A stretch of 64,000 bases of DNA from Bugula neritina (lineage: Eukaryota; Animalia; Bryozoa). The position numbers were made by a program, and so were the translations under genes. Below, one piece after another: positions 51,101-54,100 of this stretch. Below the pieces are notes generated by a model that was not told the DNA's origin, searched no databases, and saw nothing but the letters and a program-made list of their open reading frames with translations. The stretch is taken from the NCBI GenBank assembly GCA_964035545.1, contig OZ037767.1, positions 27,172,628 through 27,236,627 on the forward strand. The letters are read 5' to 3'. Numbering within the stretch: the stretch's first letter is position 1; each line of letters starts with the position of its first letter.

Positions 51101-54100
51101 GTTTACCCAACAAACTCTGTCAACAGGACACAAGTTAGCTGCACTGTAATACAAATCAAATAGTGCACAATACCATGTGGTCACATGACTTGTCTTGAGC
51201 GTGCAGGGGGAGGGGTGTGGGGGGCTTTTGTTTAAAAAAACCAATATTTGTAATACAGCAAGTTTTTAAAAGCCAAACCAAAAATCATATTCGTAAGCTA
51301 AACAAACATATTAGGTGAAGTTAAATTGATATAAGCTGTATGATGGAAATGTCATTTTTCTTGTGGATATTTGCTCTTTTGATTAAGGATAAATGAAGAA
51401 GCTCATTAATGCTTCTTTCCTTGAAAGAAGTACTTTAATCATACTACTATTATATAATTGAATAAACTGCATTTGAAGTATTGTTATCAACAGTGTATGA
51501 ATCACTATATGAAAGAGGTATATCAAATAACCACGTATAGCAAAATAAATTCCACAAAACGTTTTCTGTCACATTTGGTGGCCACTGATGAGCGTTTATT
51601 TCCTCATGTACTCTCTTATTGCACTGAAATATTATATATAGATAATATTATATTCATATTACATAACAAAGCTTTTATCTCAATTGTAAACATGGAAATT
51701 CTTGCATCATATTTGCTTATACCTACATGTAATACATTATATTTAATATTATTATTGACTTCTTATATATATATATATATATATATATATATATATATAT
51801 ATATATATATATATATATATATATATATATATATATATATGTATATATATATATATATATATATATATATATTACTTATATTATAATACTTCCCATACAT
51901 TATTTAATAGCTTATTACTTAATGCCTTTTGCACTGATATATGTAAACCTTGCAAGTACTCTGTATACATATACTGATTGTAGAATGAATTGTCTGCACT
52001 CTCAAAAGCCATCCACGAGACTGTTGGACTCCAGTTTGGGGAGGTGACTATTGTAGTCCCGTCATACTGGAATAGAGAGACTTATGGCACGGCATTCGAT
52101 GAATCTCCAGAGTCAGCCGACATTCTCATACAGCCACTAGAAGGCGTCTCTTTAGTTCCTTCTCTAGGCGAGTCTCCCATTGCCTATACTCGACACATAC
52201 AACCCTGTGGAATGCAAGGATTACGTCTCGTTGTAGATGCTGGAGTGTTTAAAGAACAACGCAATGCCCGTAAATATATATAATGAAATGGTGTAATAAT
52301 TTTATATATTGAAGTTACTAGAAATATCTTGTTGCTGAATTTTTACAATCATGTGCGCGAATCTTTCTCAGTTTGTTTAAACAAAAAGTCCCATGTCAAT
52401 GAGTAAAAACATACAAATGTAATAGAGATTCATGTTTGTAACCAATAACCACTATATTATAGAATAAAGATAGTACGTACTAATACTTTAACCATGAAGA
52501 TATAATAATTTGGTTTTAGAGAAAACAAAGTTGTTACTACATCAGTGGATGCACCTCAGATATGGAGTGTTTGATGAGTTCCCTTTACTAAATACTGAAG
52601 CAGCTGATGTGGACAAACAGAAATTCTATCACTCAGAAAACTCAATAGAATCTGTCAGGTATAAATTCCTATATCCATTATATAACTTAAATTAATGGAA
52701 AAAGTTGTGAATTACATTTCTAAACATTCAGGTAGTTTGACTTTCTGATTTGTACATTTAAGGTGCAGTCACAAGTTAGCCAGTGAAACAAGTTGCAGTA
52801 TTACTAAGGACTCGGGCTACACTGATATTGACCGAAAAACATCTTTACCTCTACAATCTTGTTCATACACTGTTAAGGCTCTCTCTGATAATTCTGCTTC
52901 ATTGATGTCTAACTATCAGCTGGAGAATGTAAGTAGAGCTCAATGTTAGCTGTTGTTGAAATTGTTATTGAGCAAAGTTTGTCAAATGAACATGTCGTAG
53001 TGCAGAGGTGGAAGAGGTTGTTTTAATAAAGCTCTAACTTTTTATTTTCTTCCAAATCATAAAAACCACAACACAAACAGCGCATTTACTGGTTTAAAAT
53101 TTACATGATTTCAGCTGTAATGATTAATAAAGCATTGTTACATAGCACACATATAATATAATATTAGGTAATATAGTTATCACATATCAATGCATTACAA
53201 TGTTGAGCTTAATAAAAACAAAATGGTTCTCCTGGTGGGCTTGATATGTTTTAGACTTTAGACTTAGAATTTTCTCTTTAAAACTTTACGGTTTATAGTA
53301 TAAGCAATGTCTTTGAAACTAATATATGTGTAACACAGCTAAGATTAAACTAAATCACCATTTTGTGATGCTTGGTCTTGTCTTAAAAAACCAGGTCAAC
53401 TAGAAGATAAAGTAAATAAATATAAAAATCTAAAAAGCAACAGTTAACGCCCCCCCCCCCCCCATATTATGATCAAGGATGGCTCAGTGCTTGTTAGATC
53501 CTTTAGACAATAAATCAAAAGAAATTTTAGTCAGGTCTGGTGACTTTTTTACCGAGGACTGCTGAATTAGAATTTAAACTGGTGGAAGGCAGCGATATAA
53601 GTAAAGCTATAAATAATAACTGTCAACATTCCAGTGTCCCATGCAATAAAATGCATTTAAAAGAGTCCCTTATAGCCTCTAGTTTATATGTAATATTATA
53701 TTACCTCACACTCTTTTGTTCAGTGAAATGTAACCAAGCTTGTTTAAATATTTGATCATGCAAAGAGTTTTGCTAACAATAAAAACTACACTGCATACTG
53801 TATAAGTAGTGTAAACATTAATGGTGTATTAATTGACAGAATAATATAGTCTAAATGTTTAGGGGAAGTAGTGAACAGGTTTGGCAATTTTTAACTCATT
53901 AAGTAGCTCTCGAAATCAGAATGATAAACTCCAAAACATCAAGATAATATAGCAATATCATAATTGTTGAAGTTACACACAATAGAATATTGATGGCATA
54001 TAATATACACAATAAAACATTAACTACACATGATAGATCATATGCTGCAAGCACAGGAAAGATATAAGGAAAGTTAGTATATAGGCTAAATATTAAACCT

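Follow-up and report, generated by a model that had tools for sequence, protein, structure and literature searches.

A CLCA-family gene of the bryozoan Bugula neritina with glutamine in place of the general-base glutamate

The CLCA proteins of vertebrates regulate chloride channels and mucus, and a protease-null mutant in which glutamate is exchanged for glutamine has been a mainstay of their study. We analyzed a stretch of 64,000 nucleotides of AT-rich eukaryotic DNA from the bryozoan Bugula neritina (GenBank assembly GCA_964035545.1, contig OZ037767.1, positions 27,172,628 to 27,236,627 of the forward strand), in which a CLCA gene carries this exchange in its active-site motif. The whole stretch is called the window here, and all positions are counted from its first letter unless a contig is named. 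The question raised by this locus is whether the exchange is real, whether the gene that carries it is intact, and what kind of protein it would make. Our analysis showed that the gene is an expressed, intact and single-copy CLCA-family gene of B. neritina. From its sequence, the product with Gln173 is very likely a protease-dead binding protein.

The motif lies at 52540–52578 on the forward strand, where the codons CAT CAG TGG ATG CAC ... GTG TTT GAT GAG are translated to HQWMHLRYGVFDE. The glutamine codon CAG at 52543–52545 specifies Gln173 within exon 3, and in the alignment to paralogs and relatives this residue stands exactly at the Glu of HExxH. The HExxH motif with its general-base Glu is absent from the gene, which reads HQWMH. 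No other H[EQ]xxH of CLCA kind was found in the open frames of the window. Three exons matched the Pfam family CLCA_N (PF08434) in colinear order (Table 1), exon 3 with an E-value of 1.2e-5 and exon 5, taken alone, with 37.3 bits against the family cut-off of 25.6; exon 5 was also recovered when the genome of the species itself was searched with PF08434. The motif is no chance match. The original prediction, made from the sequence alone, had named an HQxxH motif in a CLCA-family protein, and both statements are upheld by the sequence, the Pfam matches and the alignments.

We modeled the gene as 14 exons at 48135–59676 (+), with 3363 coding bases, 1120 codons and no in-frame stop. All 13 introns have canonical GT-AG ends after small shifts of the exon joints within alignment tolerance, and the phases and junction codons were checked for each exon. 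The stretch 51980–57900 was compared with other sequencing runs, and 10 of the 13 introns (introns 2 to 11) were confirmed by spliced RNA contigs from two independent studies, the RNA-Seq run X5 of 2016 and the run X9 of 2015. Contigs of the DNA runs X2 and X4 are unspliced and read straight through the introns. Open frames, phase and splice signals served to place exons 1, 13 and 14; an X9 RNA contig that carries 293 nt upstream of exon 2 is compatible with exon 1 plus a 5' untranslated region. In a search of the species' own genome, the gene was found to be single-copy in the assembly, by which a haplotig or a second gene copy is ruled out.

The PF08434 search of the 216-Mb assembly detected about 16 CLCA loci. 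Four tandem genes on contig C1 all read HEWGH, and one gene on contig C5 at 4.8 Mb reads HEWAH. About 10 further paralogs on C5, at 11.93–15.21 Mb (L031–L040), read K/R-E-F-A-H-L-K-W-G-L-F-D-E and have lost the first zinc-binding His. The window gene lies on contig C3. The canonical HExxH is present in five of the roughly 16 genes, and about two thirds are without it. Judging from these sequences, the canonical motif has been lost by at least two separate routes, namely Glu-to-Gln in the window gene and K/R for the first His in about 10 paralogs. The window gene is the most divergent CLCA of the genome, with 18–42% identity in exon 3 to its paralogs. The first CLCA paralog on C1 (~26.3236–26.3247 Mb) was also seen to carry a long (TTTPTTTP)n mucin-like stalk between its fibronectin type III (FnIII) part and the membrane anchor; in its tandem neighbours the Thr/Pro repeat is short or absent.

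The predicted protein of the window gene, a type I membrane glycoprotein of 1120 residues, consists of a signal peptide, the CLCA_N domain, a VWA domain with a metal-ion-dependent adhesion site (MIDAS), a beta-sheet-rich region, an FnIII-like region, one transmembrane helix and a cytoplasmic tail, in this order. A cryo-electron microscopy preprint on CLCA1 describes His156, His160 and Asp167 as the zinc ligands, Glu157 as the general base and Met238 as the Met-turn (10.1101/2025.10.18.683246). A second zinc site is formed by Cys187, Cys250 and His255 together with the Glu after Asp167 (10.1101/2025.10.18.683246). The equivalences to human CLCA1 used here were taken from our paralog alignments and from the text of the structure paper; when three exons were searched against the PDB, no CLCA metallohydrolase chain was found. 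Alignment to the canonical paralogs showed that His172, His176, Asp183, Glu184, Cys212, Met259, Cys271 and His276 are all kept. Retention of both His and of the downstream acidic residues had been claimed at the outset, and the alignment extends it to the Met-turn and the second-zinc residues, so that the general base alone is altered. The VWA domain has the DxSxS pattern of the MIDAS as D336-T-S-N-S340, followed by a later TDG stretch, and its single-exon Pfam match is weak. A gene with an intact DTSNS and no stops had likewise been predicted, in agreement with the 1120 open codons. The transmembrane helix is followed by a cluster of Cys, and a K-x-x-P-x-x-P stretch is found in the tail. The membrane anchor is common to the canonical paralogs and is not a distinguishing feature. 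The tail is ~169 amino acids long, compared with 14–25 in the C1 paralogs, as expected from the long tail of the original prediction.

The self-cleavage site of CLCA1 is located in a loop of the inhibitory domain that plugs the cleft (10.1101/2025.10.18.683246). We measured this loop between the strand past the calcium-site motif and F-x-R-[FY]-S, and found 2 residues in the window gene and ~36 in the four HEWGH paralogs. This comparison, like that of the furin-type site below, covered the four C1 paralogs. The deficit of 33 residues is the sum of 18 at the end of exon 12 and 15 after the PG of exon 13, which flank an intron of conserved position. Neither exon could be longer: past the donor of exon 12 the frame runs straight into a stop codon, and the acceptor of exon 13 is preceded by no more than 11 open codons. 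No micro-exon was seen in the part of intron 12 that falls within the compared stretch, and one may exist elsewhere in the intron. The missing cleavage loop that had been predicted is therefore confirmed, as a region 33 residues shorter than in the canonical C1 paralogs.

A furin-type site had been given as another mark of this protein. RRERR↓S (residues 640–645) is present and sits in a variable loop upstream of the cleavage-loop position, but it is not special, since RAKR↓S stands at the corresponding position in one of the four canonical C1 HEWGH paralogs; the other three are without a site. A convertase site can therefore occur in this loop independently of the Gln change. The idea that a furin site replaces self-cleavage specifically in the window gene is weakened by the same RAKR↓S.

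To place the exchange among related sequences, exon 3 was searched against 1.84 billion representative proteins. Five matches were obtained, all of them exon-sized open reading frames (Logan, TARA) with 55–64% identity, and no full-length protein was among them. Three of the five read HEWLH, one HEWMH and one HHWMH. A strict DNA pattern for WMH gave no match in metagenomes, and a degenerate DNA pattern with the second residue left free gave nine further metagenome or whole-genome shotgun contigs, all HEW[LF]H. Twelve of the 14 relatives, exon-sized sequences from marine samples, are the nearest and share the signature RYGVFDE..QKFY (11 HEW[LM]H and one HHWMH), and two more distant ones read HEWFH. 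Gln was found at the general-base position in none of the 14. The relatives share R-Y-G-V-F-D-E, the closer ones also D-x-Q-K-F-Y...E-x-V-R, and relative contigs that extend into neighbouring exons agree with the window gene in exon layout, with identities in exon 2 of up to 46%. Their Glu codon is GAA or GAG, the latter being one G-to-C transversion from CAG. Because the nearest relatives found keep Glu, the Glu-to-Gln change is lineage-specific. The HHWMH relative (P0004, a 908-nt contig of Logan run SRR25569779) has His for the general-base Glu, one step from a Gln codon, and may represent a second loss of the general base in the same subgroup. The original prediction had also supposed an HQxxH subfamily of CLCA. 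This was not supported: 11 of the nearest relatives read HExxH, one reads HHxxH, and none has Gln. From sequence similarity, the window gene belongs instead to a distinct CLCA subgroup that has a single member in this genome and whose members normally carry Glu.

Whether the gene is maintained by selection was explored with other DNA of the same or a close lineage. In word searches, exon 3 and exon 2 gave no match, and the last exon matched a single product, from an independent metagenome contig of the Joint Genome Institute (JGI). The two last-exon products are 94% identical, with a synonymous divergence (dS) of 0.156, a non-synonymous divergence (dN) of 0.023 and a ratio of the two (omega) of 0.147. 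Omega is 0.11 in the tail and 0.22 in the part that comprises the ectodomain and the helix, and the synonymous-to-replacement changes stand at 25:16. Divergence from the JGI contig is 8% in the adjoining intron and 3' sequence. The sole indel in 912 coding bases is an in-frame one of 9 nt (59041/59042 of the window against 510–519 of the contig), located in the stalk just outside the membrane. The comparison haplotype or sibling lineage is ~5% diverged, and the 2016 "symbiont metagenome" runs hold ~95% identical DNA. In exons 6–7, 10 synonymous and two replacement changes were counted among the 12 differences listed between the other runs and the window; the list gives the 40 best-supported of 330 differences. 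The CLCA gene is under purifying selection. The continued selection that had been predicted was supported by the dN/dS check, with omega ~0.15 in the last exon and 10:2 in exons 6–7.

Lenart et al. have surveyed substituted sites and reported in 2013 that 72% of the CLCA_N family have HExxH, with at least five independent losses (PMC3650047). The common CLCA_N changes are first His to Arg and second His to Lys, and Glu-to-Gln was named for the M54 and BSP families but not for CLCA (PMC3650047). According to a later paper, mammalian CLCAs all keep HExxH, and the 2013 survey is the only one to have been published (PMC9007345). The K/R-EFAH paralogs of B. neritina match the first-His-to-Arg type. 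The window gene is likewise a CLCA_N gene without HExxH, substituted at the site and otherwise intact, but it differs from the reported CLCA changes in that both His are kept and only Glu is altered. CLCAs with a substituted catalytic site, as the original prediction put one forward, had already been described in 2013 (PMC3650047). In the literature searched, we found no description of a natural CLCA that has Gln for Glu, retains both His and lacks the cleavage loop. On the sequence, this gene is a new case within the known inactive CLCAs.

Other known systems can be compared. The vertebrate CLCA2/CLCA4-type genes, whose products are membrane-anchored metalloproteases that cleave themselves, have the same 14-exon layout and the same domain order, including the C-terminal transmembrane helix (PMC9007345). 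The window gene differs from them by Gln for Glu, by the absence of the cleavage-site loop, by a much longer tail and by RRERR↓S. The engineered mutants carry the identical change at the identical position. Self-cleavage was abolished in human CLCA1 E157Q (PMC6085540) and in human CLCA2 E165Q, which still formed complexes and could be cut in trans by the wild-type protein (PMC10669480), and cleavage was also abolished in chicken CLCA1 E164Q (PMC9007345). Such mutants fold, are secreted or inserted in the membrane, and form complexes, without self-cleavage. They are laboratory-made and keep the cleavage loop, whereas the window gene is natural and selected and has the loop deleted. Among the ADAMs, non-catalytic members with HQxxH or LQxxL have membrane-anchored, metzincin-type ectodomains with a dead site that serve in binding or adhesion (cited in PMC3650047). 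Their likeness to the window protein concerns the mode of working only, as the family and the domain set are different.

Taken together, we consider it probable that the gene encodes a zinc-binding, non-hydrolytic cell-surface CLCA ectodomain that acts by binding and is possibly cut by a convertase at RRERR644. The CLCA_N domain would still fold and bind zinc, but Gln173 would be unable to activate water, so that neither self-cleavage nor cleavage of a substrate would take place. At the cell surface the protein would bind with its cleft and with the MIDAS of the VWA domain, and any processing would be left to a furin-type convertase at RRERR644↓S. Sequence, gene structure, expression, constraint and family setting are observed; we infer that zinc is bound, that catalysis is lost, that a convertase cuts the protein and that it works by binding, and a receptor or adhesion role may be supposed. 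Some points weigh against this interpretation. Phe185 replaces Tyr169 of CLCA1, a residue adjoining the zinc site; the homology evidence was gathered exon by exon; and the figures for constraint come from exons outside the protease domain, namely those of the VWA and the C-terminal part. The CAG codon comes from the assembly, and contigs of other runs span 52543–52545 with the letters there unread. In addition, the E-to-Q change merely impairs cleavage in mouse CLCA4a (PMC9007345), and Gln therefore does not always mean absence of processing. The protein might accordingly still be a working or weakly working protease or be cleaved like other CLCAs, by residual activity, by another base or by a trans cut from an active HEWGH paralog. 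All metal ligands are kept in it, five canonical HEWxH paralogs are encoded in the same genome, and the trans cleavage of CLCA2 E165Q (PMC10669480) offers a precedent. However, the exchange stops cleavage altogether in human CLCA1 and CLCA2 and in chicken CLCA1, and because the cleavage loop is missing, trans cutting at the usual site would have no target. We regard a working or normally cleaved protein as unlikely.

The reliability of the CAG codon itself must also be weighed, since it could be an assembly error or a rare allele in a species that normally has GAG (Glu). The codon is without a reading in independent data, the relatives carry GAA or GAG, and its region seems to be polymorphic: an X5 contig has its first letter at 52546, and two others of this run, which span junctions and have 56 letters on the exon 3 side, stop at 52575. 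These contig ends overlap by 30 letters, as would be expected if a bubble in a k = 31 graph had its last variable base at 52545, which is the third position of the codon. This suggests that one transcript allele reads CAG and the other either CAA, again Gln, or CAY, which is His, but not GAR; the argument is indirect. Exon 3 has no entry among the 40 best-supported of the 330 differences. For X9, four differences were counted over the 137 nt of exon 3; for X5, three were counted over the final 111 nt. The first 26 nt of the exon can therefore hold no more than about one. The missing cleavage loop is, moreover, an independent change in the same direction as Gln. An erroneous or rare codon is thus quite improbable. 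A decaying gene would be a different explanation, namely a young pseudogene in which the protease site and the cleavage loop were lost first. Two hallmark features, the general-base Glu and the loop, are indeed gone, and the divergence of exon 3 from all paralogs would fit. On the other hand, the 1120 open codons, the 13 canonical introns, the spliced transcripts in two studies, omega of ~0.15, the synonymous excesses of 10:2 and 25:16 and an indel that is in frame all argue against decay. On open frame, splicing and omega we reject this explanation, which has hardly any probability left.

A more specific form of the binding protein can be imagined, and we put it forward as a speculative and rather doubtful one. 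The protein might be a natural "substrate trap" turned receptor, with zinc bound, the base gone and the plug loop deleted, so that a ligand would be held uncut by the cleft and the MIDAS. It is a similarly tentative thought that such a receptor might signal through the conserved (omega 0.11), proline-rich and cysteine-clustered tail, with furin-type processing in place of self-cleavage. If this were true, the HHxxH relative would mean that the general base was given up more than once in the group.

The exons of the gene are collected in Table 1.

Table 1. Exons of the CLCA gene in the window, with the parts of the protein that they encode and the support for each.
Exon	Position	Strand	Encoded part	Support
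1	48135..48341	+	Start ATG and signal peptide, residues 1–69	Open frame, hydrophobic leader, GT donor at 48342
2	51984..52269	+	First part of CLCA_N metallohydrolase domain	Pfam CLCA 49–113; RNA joint 52269->52520, GT..AG
3	52520..52658	+	Active-site helix H172-Q173-W-M-H176...D183-E184-F185	Pfam CLCA 126–163; spliced on both sides (X5, X9)
4	52763..52928	+	Cys212, conserved SLP..C, Met-turn SLM (Met259)	Aligned to a C1 paralog and to a relative; RNA joints
5	54208..54328	+	End of CLCA_N; Cys271 and His276 (second zinc, by homology)	Pfam CLCA 223–260, 37.3 bits
6	54559..54695	+	Start of VWA; MIDAS D336-T-S-N-S340	Weak VWA_2 match; RNA joints
7–9	55147–55342, 55614–55802, 56012–56142	+	Remaining VWA domain	RNA joints, phases, open frames
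10	56521..56780	+	Beta-sheet-rich region	RNA joints, open frame
11	56912..57096	+	Variable loop with furin-type R640-R-E-R-R644↓S645	Alignment to four C1 paralogs
12	57447..57696	+	DNGVGAD..DGIYS calcium-site-like motif; without last 18 residues of C1 paralogs	Stop codon directly past donor
13	58055..58233	+	FnIII-like start; without 15 residues after initial PG	Splice sites inferred
14	58760..59676	+	End of ectodomain, transmembrane helix ~926–951, 169-residue cytoplasmic tail, stop codon	94% identical JGI product

Other features were observed in and around the gene. Intron 1 holds a long (TA)n / (TATATA)n microsatellite at 51700–51900, just upstream of exon 2. Word depths in two intron segments, 55438–55545 and 57122–57290, range from thousands up to 100,000 in each of the four runs. 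The former resembles a tRNA-derived short interspersed nuclear element, with A-box and B-box-like motifs of the type GGTTCGAATCC, and ARAGORN called no tRNA gene on these two high-copy repeats. Downstream of the CLCA gene, at 62650–63990 (+), several open frames encode repeated C2H2 zinc fingers, joined by H/C links of the TGEKPF type, and make up a multi-exon zinc-finger gene.

The established picture of the CLCA family is left unchanged by this gene. It adds a Glu-to-Gln case to the published substituted CLCA sites, which is useful for annotation of the family and for work on pseudoenzymes. As a natural counterpart of the engineered change that is under selection and has its cleavage loop removed, it would allow the binding functions of the CLCA scaffold to be told apart from proteolysis.

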